Source of the DNA: Vitrella brassicaformis CCMP3155
Taxonomy: Eukaryota > Protista > Chromerida
Length of the DNA stretch: 64,000 bases
Assembly: GCA_001179505.1 (NCBI GenBank)
Contig: CDMY01000217.1
Location: forward strand, 1-64,000
Reading direction: 5' to 3'
Of this stretch, positions 1,143 through 49,897 are shown one piece after another. Numbering within the stretch: the stretch's first letter is position 1; every line of letters starts with the position of its first letter. A program made the translations under genes and the position numbers. Under the pieces are notes generated by a model. That model worked only from the letters and a program-made list of their open reading frames with translations, was not told the origin of the DNA and did no database searches.

Positions 1143-1925
1143 TCACGCTACAGTGAAGACATCCATTTCGTCGGCCATAAATGCCTCACTGCCCCCAAAC
1201 ACAGCGTTGCCATGGTCTCTCACTCCCACATAGTCCTCAGGCACGACACGGCTGGGGATCCAGTGACAACAGCTGCGCATATCACTAGCAGCGCCACCCT
1301 CATAGCCCAACCACAGCCACCCACCGAGCCTCACCTTCGCCCCATCCGCTGTCCTCTCCCGCCCGGCCACCTGCACTGGCAGCCAGCCCTCCCCCATTTT
1401 GGTAGGTCCCTTGGTGAAGTGGCCGGCCTGAGAGAAATACCAAACATCACACCAGTAGTCGTTGTAGCCTGTTGGGTCGTCGGGCGGCCAGATGCCGTCA
1501 CTGATGAAGGCGCTGAAGACGTACTTGTCCTTGCGGATGACAAACACTAGGTTCTTCGTGTCACCCGCACACCGCAGGAAGTCGCCATACAATGGCCCGT
1601 CACGAGAAGCCCTGAAAATAGGAGAAAGACGAGAGAGAGAGAGAGTCAAACGACGGACGATATAGGACACCTGTAGATGAGCTTCAGTGTGTTTCCAGTT
1701 GTCGCTCCGATGAACCGATAGAGTGCCGCCGACTGGAGTGGATCAAAAGTTGCACCCTCGATCACCTGCAATCAAATCAACAGAACACCGATACCGCTCT
1801 CCCTCGCTGATGTCTGTGTTTATGACCTTGAGTGAGAGCAGTGATCGGCCGTCGACATGAATGACTTCCACTTCATCAGCCATGAAGTACTTACTGCCCC
1901 CAAACACAGCACGGTAATGCTTAAC
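1143..1925 (-). pseudogene. 5'-truncated tandem TLDc-domain gene (end of one domain plus one full domain)
   Basis: Spliced reading AVFGGSKYFMADEVEVIHVDGRSLLSLK|VIEGATFDPLQSAALYRFIGATTGNTLKLIYR|ASRDGPLYGD...LVFVIRKDKYVFSAF...FSQAGHF...AVFGGSEAFMADEMDVF* through two GT-AG introns. Homologous to the genes at 36.9-46 kb. The 5' part is replaced by minisatellite sequence near 1935. Confidence 0.75.
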
Positions 1926-36916: not shown

Positions 36917-38471
36917 ATGGTGCGGAGTGCTGTTTTCATGATGCTTCTCGCTGTGGCGTCGACCTGTGTCGCCACGGAGGCAAGACCCGCACAACAGGTG
37001 AGTGCACACACCCATGACCCGTATACGACCCATTCACTCATTCGCTTTGGTGAAAATGGCTGACTCGTGTGTTCAGGCCCATTTTCGTGGCCTGCAGGTG
37101 TCCCCGCCTGGCAACACGTCCCTGTGTGTGTCCGAGTATAAGGCGCTGCTCGGCCTGCTGGGGGGCAATGAGACCACACCGCTCACCTCACTCTACCGGT
37201 ACGCACACACATCATGCCATGACTCCAACAGCTGGCAGATGGCTCTCCGTCTGTGTGTGTGTGTGTGTGTGGCGTAGGACGTCTGTGGACGGCACCACTT
37301 ACGATGACCTGCTGGACAGTGTGGGCGTCGCAGAGCCTCTCGTGTTTGTCATCAGAAAGGACAAGTACGTCTTCGGCGCCTTCATCAACTGTGGTCTGGA
37401 GCTGCCCGACAACCCGACCGGCTGGCACGAGTACAGCTGTGACCTGTGGTATTTCTCGCTGGCCGGGCACTTCCCCCAGCCGACCAAGATCGAGTTCGGC
37501 GAATACAATCAGCATTTGTCGGTGGCGGGGAGGGAGGGGAGTGTGTATGGTGCGAATGTGGAGATTGGCTGGTGGCTGCGACTGGGTGAGAGGAGCCCTG
37601 ACGAGCCAGCTGCTGACATCCGCAACTGCCATCAGCTCACCCACAGGTCCCCCCTTCCCGCGGGCTATACAGGGGCGAGGGACAGCAATGGCCATGCAGT
37701 GCTGGGTGGGTCGAGGATTTTCCACGGTGATGAGATAGAGGTGCTGTATGTAGATGGATATTACGGTGGCGGTCGAATGCAGTATGTGACCCCGCCTAAC
37801 GGCACATCGTTGTCCGCGTCAGAGTATAAGGCGCTGCTCGGCCTGCTGAGGGGCAATGAGACCACACCGCTCACCTCACTCTACCGGTAGACACACATCA
37901 TGCCAACAGCTGGGATCGTGACAGCTATGGGCAGAGAGAGAGAGATCTGTGTGTGTGTGTGTGTGAGAGAGTGTGTTGTAGGACGTCTGTGAACGGCACC
38001 ACTTACGATGACCTGCTGGACAGTGTGTGCGACGTGTTTGTAATCAGAAAGGACAAGTACGTCTTCGGCGCCTTCATCAATTGCGGTCTGGAGCTGCCCG
38101 ACGATCCGACCAGCTGGCACTGGTACGACTGTGACCTGTGGTATTTCTCGCTGGCCGGCCACTTCGCCAGGCCGACCAAGATAGAGATCTATGGAGAGAT
38201 GCAGCGGGTGTTAGTGGCGGGGAGAGAGGGGAGTGTGTGGAGTGCGAATAAGTACATCGTGTCCATCGGTGGGTTCCTGTTGTTGGGTGACGATGAGGAC
38301 AGTGACCAGCCGGCTGCCGACATCCGCAGCTGCCGTCAATACAACTGGAGGTGGCATGTGCCTGCGGGCTATACAGGGGCGAGGGACAGCAATGGCTGGG
38401 CAGTGCTGGGTGGGTCAAAGTATTTCCATGCGGATGAGATAGAGGTGCTGCACGTAGTTGACGGGCAGTAG
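36917..38471 (+). CDS. Signal peptide plus two tandem TLDc domains
   Basis: Exon 1 reads MVRSAVFMMLLAVASTCVATEARPAQQ. Two copies follow of LYR|TSV.GTTYDDLLDSV...VFVIRKDKYVFGAFINCG...WYFSLAGHF...LGGS..FH.DEIEVL (TLDc motifs). Stop at 38469-38471. Confidence 0.85.
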
Positions 38472-38499: not shown

Positions 38500-41400
38500 G
38501 GGAGTCGTCTGGGCAAATATGATTTGCTTCTTTATTCAAGCCGCCACATGTGGTACGTCATGTGGTGTGTGTTGTGGTGTGTGTGTATATAATAGATGGA
38601 CTGGATGAAGATGGACGGCACCACAAAAGGGTATGCACATCCATTCTGTTTATCAGTCAATGGACTCACTCACTACAGTCACCCACTCACTGTGCGGTGT
38701 CTGGGCTGCCGTCTGTCTGTTGCCATGCGGTGATGGTTGTTGGCGAGAGTGTGTTGATCTCTGGTCGGTGCATCTGTCACACACGGCCGGCTCACAGACA
38801 GACAGGAGGACCAGCACAGTCACACACACACACACACGTTGGCCTGCCTGTCTCATTGTTGTGTGTGTGTGGGACAGAGAGAGAGGCCGATGTGTTTTTC
38901 CGTTCACTCGCCTGGGCGAGTGTGTTCTGTCTGACATGGGTGTCTGTATAATGGTGTGTCCATCGTGTCTGTGGTACTCTGTGTTATTTTCCTGCATGCG
39001 TGTGTGTCCACCCTCTCCCTCTGTGGGCATCTTGACGATTGATCCGAGGCAACTTGACGATCTGATCAATCGACTGACTGACTCAGACACATGCTTATCC
39101 ATGGAAAGAGTTGACCTCACGGCCGTCACCCGCGGCACACACCGGCAGACACACTAAAAGAGATATGGCCGGCAGGTGAGTCAGCTGGGCAGCCAAACAC
39201 ACTCACACATCGGCCGCAGCATCACATCAAAATCGGCCGGCAGCGGACCGGATCGCACCACATGCACTCACACTCACACCCACACCCACACCCACAGGCA
39301 GCCAGCCATTCGGTCACAGAGCAGCAGCAGCTGGTCCACACAGTGAGCGGTGGGCGATGTGTGCTGAAGAACAAACCGATCGGCGACAGAGATGAATGAC
39401 GACAGCCAGCACCCAACTTGAGATGCCCTCCTGACAACACACACACACACACACACACAGAGGGCAGGGCGGCACTCAGCCACATGGCGACAGAGGGGAT
39501 GCATCGCTGCGCACCCACCAGTGCGTGTTGGCTGATGGATCGGTCAGCCGTCACTCCATCGAGGCCGTCCACGCGACAGAGAGATAGAGAGTCAGTTCCG
39601 ACTCATCGGCCGATCTCACAGCGGCAGCCGCTCGGCCGTCGTCTGGCTTTGTTCCAGCGAGTGAATCAGCACACCAACCACACCTGACACACACACACAG
39701 ACGTCATCGGCCGCCCCTCTCTGTCCGTCTGTGTGTCCCTCCCTCTCTGTGTGTCCGTCTGTGTGTCCCTCCCTCTCTGTGTGTCTGTCGGTGTACCATT
39801 GCTCGCAGACACCAAAGCCCATCATCAGACCGCCGCACACCGCCGCATAATGAGCTCTCGTGTTGTCCGGCTGACGTCCGTCAGTCGACGACCGACACCC
39901 ACACGCAAAAGGGCCACGAGAGAGAAACAAAGGGAGATACAGAGAGAGAGATGTCAGCTAAGGCCAGGCAGTCAGTACTTATTGGGCAGCGGGGGTCGGC
40001 TCATCGGCCGATCTCTCTCCCTTCAGCACACATCATCGCCACCACTCAGTCACACAGACAGACACACATGACTCACAGCCGAGTGCCCCATGACTGACAC
40101 CAACAGGCAGCCAAACAGCGGAACGAATGGCGGGCACACCAAAAAAACGAGACTGACCTTCCTCTCTCTCACTCTCTCTGTGTGCCGTCCCATATCTCTC
40201 CCTCTCTCTCCTTCCCACGCAGACTGCGTCAATCCGTCAACACGAGTGGGTGTACAAGTACGACACACAGACAGACGGATGGCAAGAAGACACATCCGCT
40301 GCCTCATGAGCCAGGCAAACAGACAGATCTCTCTCTCTTCTCTCTGTGAGCGTGTGTGTGCGCTACCAACACCACTGCCTCATTTGGTGGGATGGTTAAG
40401 CAGTCGTGTGTGTGTCCATTCCCTCGCTCGCCCCCCTGTGCGCATCTCTGTCACCGCCCGGCAACCCTAATGCACCAACACCCTTCATGGGCTGACGCTC
40501 TTGCATTGCCGACTCCTACGAGATGCCCACAGAGAGAGGGGAGGAGGACACACACGCAAAGAAAACCATACACAGCTGGCAAAACCAAAACGGTCTCTCT
40601 CACTCAGGCAGATCAGTGTGTATGTGTGTCGGCCTGTCTGTCTGTGAGCCGGCCGTGTGTGACGGATGCATCGACGAGAGATCAACACTCTCGCGAGCAA
40701 CCGTCACTCAAGACCATACTACAGACAGACGGCAGCCGCCACCCCACACAGCGATCCCTTTGTGCAGCCAGCCAGCCAATCCTCCCTCTCTGTCTGTCTG
40801 TCATCTCTCCCCCGCCCCCCACTCACCAGCCGACACACTCATGGCAGCTGACGGCTGAGAGGTGGGAGGTGGTGGAATGACAATGGCAGCCAGACCGACC
40901 GACACGCGAAGCCCCACAACACAACACAGTGAGATCGACGCACATACGACCAAAAGGCGACATCGTGAGAGATTCAGTTCAGTTCAGTCAGCCCGTCCGT
41001 CGGCTCATCAGCCGATCTCTCTCCCTTCAGCACACATCATCGCCATCAGCGCGTCGAAGCCATCAGAGAGCCACTCAGACAGCCACACCGCACTCTGTGG
41101 ACAGACAGACAGACAGACAGACATTTGTGTGTGTGAGTCCTGCCTGTGTCCCAATGTGTGTGTGTGCCCATCTCTCTCTGCGTACCAGTTGGTCGAGTGC
41201 AGTGTTGTCGCCAGGCACCGCCGCCCCGCCCCGCCACACGACATCTGCAGCCCACCACACACACAGACAGATGACAACCACCACCACCACCGCCCGTCAT
41301 CACAGCGCCATGCATCACCTCGGCGTGTCACTCACCCCGTCGTGTGTGTCAGTCGCCCCGTGTGTGTATTCTTCGGTGAGAGCGCCCGAGAACAGAGAAC

Positions 41401-41500
41401 CGGAGGGAGGGAGAGAGGAAGGGGTGAGGGCAGATGACAGATCTCGTGCAGTGGGCCGTCAGGAGGGCTGACAACGGGCCGACAAGGGGCGGGGCAGGGC
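38500..41500. repeat. Composite spacer of shuffled repeat modules and microsatellites; related blocks at 43100-44500 and 46100-49800
   Basis: Modules recur: gatggacggcaccacaa (~38610, 43270, 46270), gagccggccgtgtgtgacggatgcatcgacgagagatcaac (~40645, 47330, 48685; a diverged inverted copy at ~38750-38800) and catcggccgatctcacagcggcagccgctcggcc (~39605, 47710). Confidence 0.8.
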
Positions 41501-42205
41501 GGCCAGAGGGTTCGAGGGGTCAAGGGTGGGGTTTTCTACCCTGAACCCCACGAGCTGTGGGCCACCAGACCCCCAGCCTTTGCCGCATTCTTTTCGCTGT
41601 TTGTCTCTTCTGTCGTGTCAATGGTCTCACTGCGGAGCGGTCAATGTGATGAAAAAAGAAAATCAATTTGCGGAAGTCGGTGATCGAGTGACGATCGAAT
41701 TGCCGTTTTTCTCGAAGCTCACACATTCATTTGGCCTTTTCGGTGCACGAGATTGTCCAGTGAGAGTCCAGAGGACCATCCAGTGAGAGAACGGAGGGCT
41801 GAGAGAGGAAAAGCTTGTTCCTCCAACTCGCACCGCCCTTCTCTCTGCCCTCCACACACACAAGATGGCGAGTCGGCGGGAGCGTCAATGGGGAGAGCTT
41901 TACAAGAAGTCTGAGTGGAGAGATCTGCAATTCCCGAGCGATGAGCCCCGAGAGGGAGAGAGTCTCTCTGATCTATTCTCCCTGATCTCACTCACTGCTG
42001 TCTTGTTCATCATCGAGGTATCACAACACGCACCGCTTTCTTTTGTGCAGCTTCGGTCAGTGGACCTTAGCAACTGAGGGCAGCCGCTGCTTCCTATCTG
42101 CGCTCACGCTGCCTCCCCGTGGCATTTGCGGTGAGAGCTTAAGGGGGCTGGGCTCTCGAACAGTTTCAGCGCACCCAGCTAGGTGGAAGGGTTGTCGTCC
42201 AGGCG

Positions 42206-42485
42206 ATGGCACAGCTCTCCACGTGTGCTGCGCTGCTGATGATGACTGTCAGCTTGACGTGTGTTGGCGCAGAGGGACAGCAGGTGCACCACACACGGAG
42301 GCCATCAATCCATTCCTTCGATACTCTGGTGTGCATGGCTGTCTTGTGTGTCCAGGTCCGTCTGCGTCGTGTGCAGGTGTCCCCTCCTGGCGGCACGTCG
42401 CTGTCTGCCGCAGAGTATGAGGGGCTGCTCGACTTGATGGGCAATGACAATGGCACAAAACTCAACTCACTGTACCGGTAGGCAA

Positions 42486-42529
<44 letters not shown>

Positions 42530-43051
42530 GTGTGTGTGTGTGTGTGGCGTAGGACGTCGGTGCACGGCACCACTTACGGTGACCTGCTGGACAGTGTGGG
42601 CGACGCAGAGCCTCTCGTGTTTGTAATCAGAAAGGGCAAGTACGTCTTCGGCGTCTTCATCAATTGTGGTCTGGAGCTGCCCGACGACCCGACCGACTGG
42701 CATAAGTACGACTGTGACCTGTGGTGGTTCTCGCTGGCCGGCCACTTCCCCGAGCCGACCAAGATCGACATCGACCGAGGGGATCAGTGGGTGGCGGTGG
42801 CGGGGAGGCAGCGGGGTGCGAGGGGTGCGGGTGTGAGGATCGGGTGGTGGCTGTCGTTGGGTCTAGGCCACGGTGACAGTGACCGGCCGGCTGCCGACAT
42901 CCGCAGCTGCATGCAAATCACCGGTAGCCGCATGGTGCCTGAGGGCTATACGGGGGAGTGGGATGAGTATGGCGACGCAGTGCTAGGCGGGTCGGACTTC
43001 TTTCATGCCGATGAGATAGAGGTGCTTCACGTGATGGGGAATAGTCGGTGA
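42206..43051 (+). CDS. Signal peptide plus single TLDc domain (3 exons)
   Basis: MAQLSTCAALLMMTVSLTCVGAEGQQ|VRLRRVQVSPPGG...LNSLYR|TSVHG...LGGSDFFHADEIEVLHVMGNSR*. Second intron at 42478-42552. Confidence 0.88.
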
Positions 43052-45213
43052 GGAAGGGGGCATGTTTCGATTTGGCGTGCGATGAGATGAGTGCTTTATG
43101 GAGGTTCGATTGGCTTTTGTATGCCTCACATAAACACACCTAGTGCATGGCTGCATGTGGTGTAGCAGAGGGGATTAGACGATTGGGGGGGATTTGCAGT
43201 TACTTCTTTGTTCAAGTCGCCGCATTTGGTGTGTGGCCTACATAGTGGGATGGACTGACTGGCTGAATGGATGGACGGCACCACAAGAGGGTGTGCACAT
43301 CCATCCTCTGTTTGTCCATCAGTGGACTGGCCATGCAAAGCTTATCACATCTGTGTGTCGATGTCTTGCCCACCCGTCCCTTATCGAACACGTTCACTCA
43401 TTCACTCAACCATACAACACACCACACACACATCCATCTGTGTGTGTGTGTGTGTCTGTCAGCCGCTCGACGGCCACCGCACACAGAGAGCGATGATCAT
43501 CACAGAAGACAACAACACACACATCCATCTCTGTGAGTCTCATCTGATTGTCTGTGTGCTCACTGCCCACATCAGTCAGCGCCCCTCAACGCAGCGGACA
43601 TGGCAGCCACTCAGTCAATCAATCAAAGGCAACACACATCACCAGCAAGACACCCAACATGACACAGCGGCCGTCAGGTGGCTGAGGTGTCACACCAGAC
43701 AGACACAACCGATACCCTGACAGTGAGGAGGTCAGTCAACGAACAGCCTGGCCACTCCTGTGTGTGTGCGTGTGTGTGTGTTTCTGTGTCTGTCAGCCGC
43801 TCGATGGCCACCAAACACAGAGAGCGATGATCGACACTCAACGTGTAACTTGACCACCAAGCAGCCGACAGCCAGCACACCTACAAACGATGCACACGAC
43901 GGACAGACGAACCAAACCGACGTCTCTCTCTCTCTCTCTCTCTCCTTCCCACAGGCACATACACATCAGCAGCAATAGACAGACAGAGAGGCACACAGAA
44001 GCCATGCAGTGGGATGCGCACATCGGTCCATCCGCGAGTGGGCTGCCCACCAGCGCCATCGGCATGGCCTCCCCAACAGACATACAGACAGCACCTTCAC
44101 CGTCACCGAGTCACACCTGCACCCACACAGGCGACACAGACCGTTGTGTGTGTCCTCTCCTCCGTGTGCCCATCTCTCTGCGTACCAGTTGGTCGAGTGC
44201 AGTGTTGTCGCCAGGCACCGCCGCCCCGCACCGCCACACGACATCTGCAGCCCACCACACACACAGACAGATGACAACCACCACCACCACCGCCCGTCAT
44301 CACAGCGCCATGCATCACCTCAGCGTGTCACGCACCCGTCGTGTGCATCAGTCGCCCCGTGTGTGTGTTTTTCGGTGAGAGCGCCCGAGAACAGAGAACC
44401 GGAGGGAGGGAGAGAGGAAGGGGTGAGGGCAGATGACAGATCTCGTGCAGTGGGCCGTCAGGAGGGCTGACAACGGGCCGACAAGGGGCGGGGCAGGGCG
44501 GCCAGAGGGTTCGAGGGGTCAAGGGTAGGGTTTTCTACCCTGAACCCCACGAGCTGGGCCTTCTGTGGTGAGCTCGCATGAAAGGCCCCAGCAGACCCCC
44601 AGCCTTTGCCGCGTTTTTTTCGCCTGTTTGTCTCTTCCGTCGTGTCAATGGTCTCACTGCGGAGCGGTCAATGTGATGAAAAAAGAAAATTAATTTGCGG
44701 AAGTCGGTGATCGAGTGACGATCGAATTGCCGTTTTTCTCGAAGCTGACACATTCGTTTGGCCTTTTCGGTGCACGAGATTGTCCAGTGAGAGTCCAGAG
44801 GACCATCCAGTGAGAGAACGGAGGGCTGAGAGAGGAAAAGCTTGTTCCTCGAGCTCGCACCGCCCTTCTCTCTGCCCTCCACACACAAAGATGGCGAGTC
44901 GGCGGGAGCGTCAATGGGGAGAGCTTTACAAGAAGTCTGAGTGGAGAGATCTGCAACGAGAGCACCCGAGCGATGAGCCCCGAGAGGGAGAGAGTCTCTC
45001 TGATCTCCTCTCCCTGATCTCACCCACTGCTGTCTTGTTCCTCATCTGCATCGCCAGGTATCACAATACGCACCGCTTTCTTCTGTGCAGCTTCGGTCAG
45101 TGGACCTTAGCAACTGAGGCCTATCTGCGCTCACGCTGCCTCCCTGTGGCATTTGCGGCGAGAGCTTAAGGGGGCTGGGCTCTCGAACAGTTCGAGCGGA
45201 GACTCTCCACGCG

Positions 45214-45510
45214 ATGGCACAGCTCTCCACGTGTGCTGCGCTGCTGATGATGACTGTCAGCTTGACGTGTGTTGGCGCAGAGGGACAGCAGGTGCACCAC
45301 ACACGGAGGTCATCAATCCATTCCTTCGATACTCTGGTGTGCATGGCTGTCTTGTGTGTCCAGGTCCGTCTGCGTCGTGTGCAGGTGTCCCCTCCTGAGA
45401 ACACGTCGCTGTCTGCGTCAGAGTATGAGGCGCTGCTCGACTTGATGGGCAGTGACAATGGCACAGAACTCAACTCGCTGTACCGGTAGGCAATCACACA
45501 CACACACACG

Positions 45511-45546
<36 letters not shown>

Positions 45547-46054
45547 TCTGCGTGTGTGTATGTGTGTGTGTCGTAGGACGTCTGTGGACGGCACCACTTA
45601 CAATGACCTGCTGGACAGTGTGGGCGACGCAGAGCCTCTCGTGTTTGTCATCAGAAAGGGCAAGTACGTCTTCGGCGTCTTCATCAATTGTGGTCTGGAG
45701 CTGCCCGACGACCCGACCGACTGGCATAAGTACGACTGTGATGTCTGGTATTTCTCGCTGGCCGGCCACTTCCCCAAGCCCACCAAGATCGACATCGACG
45801 AAGGGGATCACTTTGTGGTGGTGTCGGGGAGGGAGGGGAGTCTGTCTGGCTGGGCGAATGCGGAGATCGGTGGGCGGCTTTATTTGGGATTCCGGCCTTA
45901 CATCCGCAGCTGCATGCAGGTCACCGATAGCCGTTATCTGCCTGCGGGCTATACGGGGGAGAGGAACGAATATGGCGGTGCTTATCTGGGCGGGTCGTAT
46001 GACTTCATAGCGGATGAGATAGAGGTGCTTCACGTGGTGGGGAATAGCAGATGA
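45214..46054 (+). CDS. Signal peptide plus single TLDc domain (3 exons), paralog of 42206-43051
   Basis: Same exon 1 peptide. Ends LGGSYDFIADEIEVLHVVGNSR*. Second intron at 45486-45576. Confidence 0.88.
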
Positions 46055-49009
46055 GGAAGGGGGGATGTTTCGATTTGGCGTGCGATGAGATGAGTGCTTT
46101 GTGGAGGTTCGATTGGCTTTTGTGTGCCTCACATAAACACACCTAGTGCATGCTGCATGTGGTGTAACAGAGGAGATTAGACGATTTGGGGAGAAATGCA
46201 GTTACTTCTTTGTTCAAGTCGCCGCATTTGGTGTGTGTGGATATAATGGGATGCACTGGCTGGCTGAATGGATGGACGGCACCACAAGAGGGTGTGCACA
46301 TCAATCCCCTTTGTCCGTCAATGGACTCGCCGTGCAAAGCTTGTCACATGTGTGTGTTGATGTCTTGCCCACCCGTCGTCCCTCATCGAACACAGCCACC
46401 CATTCACTCAACCACACAACACACCACACACACACATCCAGATTGTCTGTGTGTGTCTCTGTGTGAGTCTCATGTCATTGTCTGTGTGCTCACTGCCCAC
46501 ACCACTCAGCGCCCCTCAACGCAGCGGACATGTCAGCCACTCAGTCACTCAAAAGCATTACACACATCACCAGCAAGACACCCAACATGACACAGCTGCC
46601 CTCAGGTGGTTGAGGTGTCACATCAGACAGACACAGCCGATACCCTGAGAGTGAGGAGGTCAGTCAACGAACGGCCTGGCCACTCCTTTGTGCGTGTGTG
46701 TGTGTGTGTGTGTCTGTGTCTGTCAGCCGCTCGATGGCCACCACACACAGAGAGGGATGATCAACCCTCACTGTGTCAACTGACCAACAAGGCCGAGACA
46801 GTCAGCACACCGACACACGATGCACACGACAGACGAACCAAACCGGCGTCTCTCTCTTTTTCTCCTTCCCACAGGCACATACACAACAGCAGCAATAGAC
46901 AGACAGAGAGGCACACAGAAGCCATGCAGTGCGATGCGCACATCGGTCCATCCGCCGGTGTCAGTGTGTGTTTATCGACATGGGATCATCACAGCAGCGC
47001 ATCTCCATTCCCTCGCCCGCCCCCCTGTGCGCATCTCTGTCGCCGCCCGGCAACCCTAAAGCTCCAACACCGTTCACGGGCTGACGCTCTGGCGTTGCGG
47101 GGAGGAGAGCTAGATGCCCACAGAGAGAGGGGAGGACACACACGAGGGAAATCAACACATGGTACCGATACAAGACATGATAGAGAGGTCAGTCTCTCTC
47201 TCATCCACTCGACAGGCGGAGAGCTTTCCGTGGCGCTGGGTGGCTTTGTGAGTGTCTGTCCAGCTCTCTCTCTCTCTCTCTCTCTCAGGCAGGTTATCTG
47301 TGTGTGTGTGTCGGCCTGTCTGTCTGTGAGCCGGCCGTGTGTGACGGATGCATCGACGAGAGATCAACACACTCTCGCGAGCAGACCTCACACCCGCCCA
47401 AGAGACAGACAGACGGCCACCGCCAGCCCACACAGCGATTCCTTTGTGCAGCCAGCCAGCCACTCCTCCCTGTCTGTCTGTCTGTCTGTCATCTCTCCCC
47501 CGCCCCCCACTCATCAGCCGACACACTCATCGCAGCAGACGGCTGAGAAGTGGGGGACGAGAAGGAGACATGACAATGGCAGCCAGACCGACCGACACAC
47601 AAAACCCCACAACACAACACACTCTCATAAACACGACAGCCGTCAGTCCATCGATGCCGTCCACGCGGCAGAGAGACAGACAGTCAATTCGCTCACATCA
47701 GCTCGTCGACTCATCGGCCGATCTCACAGCGGCAGCCGCTCGGCCGTCGTCTGGCTTTGTTCCAGCGAGTGAATCACCACACCAACCACACCTCACACAC
47801 ACACAGACACAGACGTCATCGGCCGCCCCTCTCTGTCCGTCTGTGTGTCCCTCCCTCTCTGTGTGTCTGTCGGTGTACCATTGCTCGCAGACACCAAAGC
47901 CCATCATCACACCGCCGCACACCGCCGCATAATGAGCTCTCGTGTTGTCCGGCTGTCTGTCGTCCGTCAGTCGACGACCGACACCCACACGCAAAAGGGC
48001 CACGAGAGAGAGACAAAGTGACAGAGAGAGAAATGTCAGCTAAGGCCAGGCAGTCAGTACGTATTGGGCAGCAGGGGTCGGCGCATCGGCCGATCTGTCT
48101 CCCTTCAGCACACATCATCGCCACCACTCAGTCACACCGACAGACAGACACACATGACTCACAGCCGAGTGCCCCATGACTGACACCAACAGGCAGCCAA
48201 ACAGCGGACGGAATGGCAGGCACAACAAACGAGACTGACCTTCCTCTCTCACACTCTCTGTCCAATATATATATCTCTCTCTCCCACGCAGATGGCGTCA
48301 CTCCATCAACACGAGTGGCTGTGATGGCAAGAAGACACACCCACTACCTCATTTGGTGTGATGGGTAAGCAGTCGTGTTTGTCCATTCCCTCGCCCGCCC
48401 CTGTGTGCGCATCTCTGTCACCGCCCGGCAACCCCAAAGCACCAACACCCTTCGTGGGCTGACGCTCTCAGGTTGCCGGGTACGGACTTAGATACCTACA
48501 GAGAGGGGGGAGGACACACACGAGGGGAAACCAAAACATGGTACCAGATACAAGACATGATAGAGAGGTCAGTCTCTCTCCCATCCACTCGACAGGCGGA
48601 GAGCTTTCCGTGGCGCTGGGTGGCTTTGTGAGTGTCTGTCCAGCTCTGTGTGTGTGTGTGTGTGTGTCTCGGCCTGTCTGTCTGTGAGCCGGCCGTGTGT
48701 GACGGATGCATCGACGAGAGATCAACACACTCTCGCGAGCAGGCGTCAGCCACAGCTGCCACACAGACAGACGGCCACCGCCACCCCACACAGCGATTCC
48801 TTTGTGCAGCCAGCCAATCCTCCCTCTCTGTCTGTCTGTCTGTCATCTCTCCCTCGCCCCCCACTCATCAGCCGACACACTCATCGCAGCAGACGGCTGA
48901 TGAGTCGAGAGCGGGTGTGCGATGGCAGCCAGACCGACAAGCAAAACCACACAGCACCACACAGAGTCAGTCAGTCAGTCAGTCGTCGACTCATCGGCCG
49001 ACCTCTCGT

Positions 49010-49046
<37 letters not shown>

Positions 49047-49507
49047 TGCTCAGCGCCAGTCAGTCAGTCGGTCCATCCGCGAGTGGGCTGCCCACCAGCG
49101 CCATCGGCATGGCCTCCCCAACAGACAGACAGACAGACAGACAGCACCTTCACCGTCACCGAGTCAGACCTGCACCCACACAGGCGACACAGACCGTTGT
49201 GTGTCCTCTCCTCCCATCCATGTGTGTGTGGCTGTCTGCCTGCCGACACACTTATGGCAGCAGACGGCTGAGGCTTGAGAGATGGCAGAGAGATGACAAT
49301 GGCAGCCAGACCGACCGACACACAGAGCCCCACAACACAACACAGTGAGATCGACGCACATACGATCAGAGGGCGACATAGTGAGAGATTCAGTTCAGTT
49401 CAGTCAGCCCGTCCGTCGGCTCATCAGCCGATCTCTCTCCCTTCAGCACACATCATCGCCATCGCGTCGAAGCCATCAGAGAGCCACTCAGACAGTCACA
49501 CACTGAG

Positions 49508-49538
<31 letters not shown>

Positions 49539-49897
49539 GTCTGTGTGTGTGAGTCCTGCCTGTGTCCCAATGTGTGTGTGTGCCCATCTCTCTCTGCGTA
49601 CCAGTTGGTCGAGTGCAGTGTCGTCGCCAGGCACCGCCGCCCCGCACCGCCACACGACATCTGCAGCCCACCACACACACAGACAGATGACCACCACCAC
49701 CGCCCGTTATCACAGCGCCATGCATCACCTCGGCGTGTCACTCACCCGTCAATGTCATGTGCATCAGTCGCCCCGTGTGTTTTTCGGTAAGAGCGGCACG
49801 GAGGGAGGGAGGGAGGGCAGGTGTCCTGATGACAGGCCGTCGAGGAGGCTGGGAACGAGCGAAAACAGCCGTGTTGCCTCTCTGAGACGGGGGGGAG

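Follow-up and report, generated by a model that had tools for sequence, protein, structure and literature searches.

A TLDc gene family of Vitrella brassicaformis with a diverged cassette between similar flanks: a putative variable binding module

Introduction

How can two neighbouring genes stay nearly alike in their non-coding DNA and differ sharply in one part of the protein that they encode? We consider this question for a pair of TLDc genes of Vitrella brassicaformis CCMP3155, an alga of coral reefs, in a window that comprises the first 64,000 nucleotides of contig CDMY01000217.1. From the letters of the DNA, the original prediction had taken the two genes to be recently duplicated and hypervariable in the C-terminal half, and had proposed diversifying selection or segmental gene conversion on a ligand-binding patch. 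The window is eukaryotic, with spliced genes, introns rich in microsatellites and 57% G+C.

Work on TLDc domains has dealt with regulation of the V-ATPase and with protection against oxidative stress. Chromerids are the closest photosynthetic relatives of the apicomplexan parasites and live with corals. In the literature that we searched, no extracellular or repertoire-like role of TLDc is described and no paper joins the terms "TLDc" and "Vitrella"; the Vitrella genome paper (Woo et al. 2015, PMC4501334) does not contain the word "TLD" in its text.

Results

Layout of the tandem units

We begin with the two direct repeats of about 3.0 kb, c1 and c2, each of which carries one TLDc gene. The exons were searched one by one, and the database protein P0001 is used as a stand-in for the full product: by word search, exon 3 of c1 is 100% identical to this protein of 221 aa, which is listed for Vitrella brassicaformis CCMP3155 and carries the annotation "TLDc domain-containing protein". 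The features of the locus are:

41150..44030, + strand: tandem unit 1 (c1), made up of the gene with its upstream region and 3' flank; outside the cassette its identity to unit 2 is 92-100%
44150..46950, + strand: tandem unit 2 (c2), a direct repeat of the c1 unit by MAFFT alignment
41160..41860, + strand: conserved upstream (promoter/leader) module, 3% diverged between c1 and c2 and 5-11% diverged from the paralogous loci L014, L004 and L007
42206..42283, + strand: putative signal-peptide exon of c1, 26 codons with a hydrophobic core; agrees with the annotated product P0001
42356..42477, + strand: exon 2 of c1, in which the TLDc domain begins and an N-x-T sequon is present; its junction to exon 3 agrees with P0001
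42553..43051, + strand: exon 3 of c1, 165 codons and stop, most of the TLDc domain
42776..43009, + strand: hypervariable cassette of c1, exon-3 residues 75 to about 152, by change-point analysis
45214..45291, + strand: putative signal-peptide exon of c2, identical to that of c1
45364..45485, + strand: exon 2 of c2; its splice to exon 3 is visible in the transcript contig L071
45577..46054, + strand: exon 3 of c2, 158 codons and stop; L071 is 100% identical over 45679-46302
45800..46012, + strand: hypervariable cassette of c2, by change-point analysis
36917..38471, + strand: neighbouring two-domain paralog, with a putative signal exon and TLDc domains at 37279-37758 and 37983-38462

Elsewhere in the genome, no fewer than 8 loci match the upstream module at 82-92%. 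The stretch that follows it (41866-42018) had at first been read as a coding exon 1, a reading that we withdraw: since c1 and c2 differ here by an 8-nt indel and the 36.6-kb paralog carries a stop at the corresponding place, it is an untranslated leader or promoter. The coding start of the two genes is then placed in the exons at 42206-42283 and 45214-45291, for which the hydrophobic core suggests a signal function. The annotated product P0001 begins at an internal Met of the c1 exon.

Domain and fold

The exons 3 of c1 and c2, each taken alone, score 26.8 and 29.6 bits on the Pfam TLDc profile (PF07534), above its gathering threshold of 24.5 bits, and P0001, the full product, reaches 37.0 bits (E = 4e-9) with a match to positions 18-166 of the 170 in the profile. 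The two domains of the neighbouring paralog fall below the threshold on exon 3 alone (22.7 bits for that at 37279, no match for that at 37983), yet they are 68-69% identical to c1. The structure predicted by AlphaFold2 from P0001 and 20 paralogs has a pLDDT of 86.5 and a pTM of 0.83. When it is compared with the PDB using Foldseek, the 14 best matches are all TLDc structures (E from 5e-7 to 1e-3), among them NCOA7, OXR2, TBC1D24, mEAK7, Oxr1 and Rtc5p, and no match beyond these is significant. The probability is 1.00 for 8ar6, 4acj, 6r82, 7u4t and 7fde, and the target-normalised TM score is 0.55-0.67 against single-domain TLDc structures, with an identity to solved TLDc domains of only 14-18%. 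According to the model, the products have the TLDc fold of the solved structures, a beta-sandwich with flanking helices.

A diverged cassette between similar flanks

The two units were aligned with MAFFT, and their identity was followed in a sliding window of 60 nt before a two-breakpoint likelihood scan was applied. The identity is 92-100% in the upstream region, the introns, the first 74 codons of exon 3 and the 3' flank, and falls to 37-70% between 42780 and 43017. The scan delimits a block (42776-43009 in c1, 45800-46012 in c2) with 63 differences in 210 positions, or 30.0%, against 103 in 1967 aligned bases, or 5.2%, outside it; the likelihood ratio statistic against a uniform rate is 108.8. 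The predicted contrast of near-identical flanks and a sharply diverged later segment is thus borne out, as is the claim that all indels of the segment are in frame (+1, -6 and -2 codons). The two domains of the neighbouring paralog, which had been said to vary in the same way, do so as well, with a pN of 0.089 in the N part vs 0.244 in the C part (37279-37758 vs 37983-38462).

The next question is whether this block has the same age as its surroundings. In the N part of exon 3 the pair has a dS of 0.108 and an omega of 0.39; in the C part the dS is 0.524 and the omega 0.54. Four-fold sites at unchanged residues differ in 3 of 32 cases in the N part and in 9 of 29 in the block, while the upstream DNA is 3% diverged. 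The synonymous divergence of the block is about 5 times that of the flanks, and since selection on the protein cannot raise synonymous divergence, the block is older in its ancestry than the flanks. Within the C part, the first 30 codons have an omega of 1.65, which is not significant, and the last 32 codons have a dS of 1.08 and an omega of 0.17, which marks an old segment under purifying selection. The c1/c2 pair on its own cannot demonstrate selection. The term "recently duplicated" therefore fits the flanks and does not fit the cassette, with its higher synonymous divergence; likewise, a C-terminal half made hypervariable by selection is not what the pair as a whole displays (omega 0.54, with the last 32 codons purified), and that part of the prediction holds for residues 75-118 across the family.

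The same contrast across the family

A six-frame search of the 72.7-Mb assembly (1064 scaffolds) with the TLDc exon gives 437 first-look candidates, and at least 153 exon-level TLDc matches are found in the Vitrella brassicaformis CCMP3155 genome, clustered on few scaffolds. The reading frame is open in 80 of 85 domain copies. One Cys position is invariant in the family and a second is kept in 84% of the copies; in some members (e.g., P0021) a RING finger replaces the signal peptide. A metagenome scan for relatives in other strains, made with a single-protein query, gave no match.

Whole loci were aligned for c1, c2, L014 (on the same scaffold at C217:72.7 kb, 27 kb away and inverted), L004 and L007 (on other scaffolds), which makes five genes on three scaffolds, and for the environmental contig L072 (ENA ERZ893784). 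Among these six loci, the upstream DNA is 3-11% diverged pairwise, the N-terminal part of exon 3 5-17%, and the 3' UTR 7-11%, L007 excepted; for the signal exon the divergence is 0-4% among c1, c2, L014, L004 and L072 and 15-19% in the pairs with L007. The block is 18-32% diverged in each pair. The contrast of flank and block is a property of the family and not a special case of c1 and c2. In a subclade of 11 genes, the four-fold divergence rises from 0.111 (N part) to 0.212 (C part).

Transcripts and artefacts of assembly

Over 624 nt (45679-46302), a length that takes in both edges of the cassette and 250 nt of 3' UTR, c2 is matched at 100% by the JGI transcript contig L071, which also shows the splice between exons 2 and 3; c2 is transcribed. 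The contig is itself chimeric: bases 1-222 are 100% identical to C217:115.8 kb, and other portions come from other paralogs. We had considered L071 as a strain ortholog and discarded this, as the contig comes from the same strain and joins transcripts of different paralogs; its use here is limited to evidence of expression and splicing. For one stretch of 120 nt in it, the assembly offers nothing above 88% identity and may therefore lack some paralogs. An assembly chimera, named beforehand as something that could produce the pattern, is rejected by the agreement of L071 with c2 across both cassette edges and by the recurrence of the pattern in other genes and in the ENA contig L072.

Exchange between paralogs

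In the 11-gene subclade the PHI test is significant for exon 3 (p <= 0.001), for its N part (p = 0.006) and for its C part (p = 0.007). The site patterns among c1, c2 and L014 change from 64:33:24 in the 5' part to 17:43:15 in the block (chi-square p = 3e-5), and the cassette of c2 is sister to that of L014, not to that of c1 (support 100/99, 84% identity and a common deletion). In the AU tests, the groupings c1+c2, c1+c2+L014 and the 11-gene subclade are not rejected as clades of the C part (p = 0.15-0.33). Because these tests are not significant, the evidence from topology, which consists of the c2+L014 support, the site-pattern test and PHI, is moderate. The gene conversion or mosaicism that had been proposed is upheld by these tests together with the dS of the block (0.52 vs 0.11 in the N part): the pair is a mosaic of homogenised or young flanks, 3-8% diverged, and an older cassette, because the block dS is about 5 times that of the flanks and the recombination tests are positive.

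Where would such a cassette come from? Whole-genome DNA searches with each cassette in the 72.7-Mb assembly return best matches of 75-77%, and that of c1 has none above 76% elsewhere; at such identities there is no recent donor in the assembly.

Two mutational mechanisms were considered and rejected. A hot spot or hypermutation is at odds with the family dS, which is equal across the three parts of exon 3 (0.28/0.25/0.34), and with a synonymous tree length that is not higher in the C part. Mutagenesis of the type driven by a diversity-generating retroelement (DGR) would call for a nearby template about 90% identical to the variable region; there is no such repeat (no second cassette copy above 77% in the genome), no A bias and no raised family dS.

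Selection on residues 75-118

Selection was measured on 28 phylogenetically independent closest paralog pairs, with exon 3 split into the N part, a variable segment (residues 75-118) and the end (residues 119-165). The dS values are by NG86, the pairwise ML values use GY94/F3x4 with kappa 1.5-3, and the likelihood code for GY94/F3x4 was written for this analysis and run on nucleotide trees and on pairs.

N part: dS 0.28; omega 0.63 by NG86, 0.40 by pairwise ML, 0.27 by ML on the 28-gene tree
Residues 75-118: dS 0.25; omega 1.36 (CI 1.16-1.61) by NG86, 1.5 (1.3-1.8) by pairwise ML, 1.5 (p = 0.03) by tree ML
Residues 119-165: dS 0.34; omega 0.82 by NG86, 0.7-0.8 by pairwise ML, 0.75 by tree ML

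For residues 75-118 the pairwise ML gives a 2dlnL of 14-18 against omega = 1, so that the dN/dS check proposed beforehand returns a value above 1 for this segment by NG86, pairwise ML and tree ML alike. For the whole C part, the family-wide omega is 1.06 (NG86 pairs) and 1.0 (tree ML). The youngest clean pair, L020/L024, has a dS of 0.08-0.10 throughout and a dN of 0.16 in residues 75-118 vs 0.02 elsewhere. In a FUBAR-like grid scan, 18 sites of the C part and 2 of the N part reach P(beta>alpha) >= 0.9, and these selected sites are interleaved with strongly purified ones; since recombination inflates site-wise false positives, the counts are to be read with this caveat, and only two sites pass the Bonferroni threshold, exon-3 residues 58 (N part) and 75 (C part).

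Trp and Tyr together make up 16.7% of the residues at selected sites vs 3.6-7.5% elsewhere. The selected residues stand at i, i+2 in three consecutive strands (P0001 135-139, 150-152 and 156-158) as well as in the loops that connect these, a pattern that would put them on one face of the sheet in the modeled fold. Diversifying selection, as first suggested, thus stands for residues 75-118 over the 28 pairs (1.36 by NG86, 1.5 by ML) and does not extend to the whole C-terminal half of the c1/c2 pair (0.54). Taken together, the comparisons support diversifying selection combined with gene conversion as the probable origin of the pattern.

Discussion

Explanations of the pattern

We think it fairly probable that c1 and c2 belong to a variable-cassette TLDc family in which positive selection acts on the cassette, duplication and gene conversion homogenise the remainder, and the domain is the scaffold of a variable binding module. 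The two genes are adjacent members of a large family; since a putative signal peptide stands ahead of the domain, secretion or display on the cell surface is probable for their products. The cassette of about 235 nt would encode three successive beta-strands with their loops, and positive selection would keep it different among paralogs (omega of about 1.5 at residues 75-118), the fast strand positions alternating with buried conserved ones and being rich in Trp, Tyr, Gly, Arg and Asp. Recent duplication and gene conversion between paralogs would account for the likeness, among some 10 genes of one subfamily, of the promoter/leader, the signal exon, the introns, the 3' UTR and the N-terminal half of the domain. 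Secretion, ligand binding by the variable face, and a role in recognition or defence are to be understood as putative functions that the sequences suggest.

Could the divergence have been imported without any special selection, by a recent tandem duplication followed by one gene-conversion tract of about 235 nt from a divergent paralog? The sharp edges of the block, its length, which is typical of such tracts, its dS of about 5 times that of the N part, and the grouping of the c2 cassette with that of L014 all agree with this account, and the stretch of 120 nt of L071 unmatched above 88% indicates that the assembly may miss paralogs. We nevertheless regard it as unlikely, for with a duplication that is only 3-5% old one would expect the later donor to retain an identity above 90%, and none above 77% is present in the 72.7-Mb assembly; the contrast appears in each pair among six genes and would need many independent replacements from unsampled donors; and an omega of 1.5 in pairs of uniform dS would be left unexplained. 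A different account lets the cassette diverge in place after very recent duplications, by positive selection or local hypermutation, without exchange between paralogs. The young pair L020/L024 has exactly such a pattern, and the AU tests do not reject one tree for both halves. This account is distinctly unlikely in our judgement: the family dS is equal (0.28/0.25/0.34) and the synonymous tree length of the C part not higher, the four-fold differences of c1/c2 (9/29 in the block vs 3/32 in the N part, with 3% upstream) cannot be produced by selection on the protein, PHI is significant, and with no adenine bias in the spectrum and no template repeat the block is not DGR-like.

That the C-terminal segment is simply decaying under relaxed constraint, or that the pattern is an artefact of assembly or alignment, is highly improbable. 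An omega near 1 for the whole C part (1.06; 1.0) and indel-rich loops that make alignment harder are what such a view can draw on; it has to face an omega significantly above 1 at residues 75-118, with sites interleaved among strongly purified positions, open frames in 80 of 85 domain copies, c1/c2 indels that are all in frame, the 100% agreement of L071 with c2 across both cassette edges, and the same pattern in an independent metagenome contig.

The variable-cassette reading can be extended. Vitrella may have turned the TLDc fold into the variable module of a large system for recognition of non-self or of partners, with several architectures, among them signal peptide-TLDc (secreted or on the surface) and RING-TLDc (E3-ligase-like), and with positive selection acting on the cassette and gene conversion keeping the remainder uniform. 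We offer this extension tentatively and consider it rather doubtful.

Implications

At least 150 copies, a segment of 44 residues at an omega of about 1.5, and paratope-like residues make the family a candidate for chromerid recognition of a variable target, perhaps bacteria, viruses, host surfaces or mating partners. If the recognition reading is true, the family would be the equivalent, in a protist, of the LRR, SPRY or FREP repertoires. According to the structural model, it would also offer a small scaffold that folds well, with a natural variable face mapped residue by residue. For genome evolution, it presents a clear case of non-coding flanks that are better conserved than the coding sequence, since conversion acts on one part of the gene and selection on another.

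Comparison with known systems

The known TLDc proteins (OXR1/Oxr1p, NCOA7, TBC1D24/Skywalker, mEAK7/TLDC1, TLDC2 and Rtc5p) are single- or few-copy, intracellular partners of the V-ATPase. The Vitrella genes share with these cytosolic proteins the Pfam domain PF07534 and the fold, and differ from them in a putative signal-peptide exon, N-glycosylation sequons, conserved Cys, at least 150 copies and a cassette with omega above 1. The signal-type N-terminal exon argues against a cytosolic location of the products of c1, c2 and the 36.9-kb gene.

The conotoxin superfamilies and the three-finger toxins of snake venoms are secreted multigene families with conserved signal and UTR and a hypervariable mature region. 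Non-coding and leader sequence more conserved than the mature coding sequence, an omega above 1 and tandem arrays are common to these toxins and the Vitrella family; the latter has an unrelated fold, belongs to a free-living or coral-associated alga, and has a family-wide dS that is not raised.

Recognition repertoires on a fixed scaffold, with exchange between paralogs, are found in the solvent-exposed positions of plant NLR LRRs, the variable loops of TRIM5/SPRY, the FREPs of molluscs and the MHC exons with their homogenised introns. By analogy, the Vitrella family would resemble them in its selected alternating beta-strand positions and loops, in recombination that homogenises the rest, and in being large and clustered; it differs in that its scaffold is TLDc and its recognition role is putative.

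Family members inside and outside the window

Combining the window with transcript and environmental sequences, we find relatives of the tandem TLDc gene copies c1 and c2. The environmental metagenome contig L072 (ENA ERZ893784, k147_4446360, 3656 nt) encodes a further member of the c1/c2 subfamily, and Vitrella-like DNA is therefore present in the ERZ893784 sample. When L072 is compared with c1 and c2, the flanks are 6-10% apart while the cassette, the hypervariable block of exon 3, is 27-29% apart. The transcript contig L071 (JGI 3300017297, Ga0186270_111986) is chimeric and joins at least three paralogs: its bases 1-222 match positions 115835-116056 of scaffold C217 at 100%, and its bases 444-1067 match c2 at 100%. 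Bases 223-345 have no match above 88% in the assembly, which suggests unassembled paralogs or an assembly artefact. In the window itself, a TLDc exon at 1149-1601 is a more distant branch of the family.

TLDc exon, introns and cysteines (window positions)
1149-1601, minus strand: another TLDc family exon, 56% identical to c1
42478-42552: intron 2 of c1, at the exon 2/exon 3 boundary
45486-45576: intron 2 of c2, at the exon 2/exon 3 boundary
37189-37286 and 37888-37982: further microsatellite introns of the same type
42713-42715 (c1): Cys, exon-3 residue 54, in 84% of domain copies
42908-42910 (c1): Cys, exon-3 residue 119, invariant among 80 domain copies

The two cysteines may form a disulfide, and such a bond, if formed, would agree with a secretory protein. 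(CA)n(GA)n(GT)n microsatellites make up the intron that separates exons 2 and 3, which has a conserved acceptor at its end and is not of equal length among the copies.

Intergenic repeat

The TLDc genes are flanked by an intergenic repeat, roughly 0.9 kb long and non-coding, within which no convincing ORF is seen.

Copies of the intergenic repeat
Window 40415-41333
Window 47295-47621
Window 48382-49743
L072 2633-3576

Dozens of copies, with 72-91% identity, are found on scaffolds C217, C315, C523 and C347. This repeat may serve as the substrate for unequal crossing-over in the TLDc arrays.

RING-bearing relatives

Two family proteins, P0021 (a JGI transcript) and P0011 (on scaffold C217, beyond the window), have 57-62% identity to c1, and in both an N-terminal RING finger replaces the signal peptide. 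In P0021 it matches zf-C3HC4 at 30.8 bits, above the Pfam threshold. TLD is the sole Pfam match in P0011, where the Cys/His pattern is discernible by eye only. E3-ligase-like proteins thus make use of the variable TLDc module as well.
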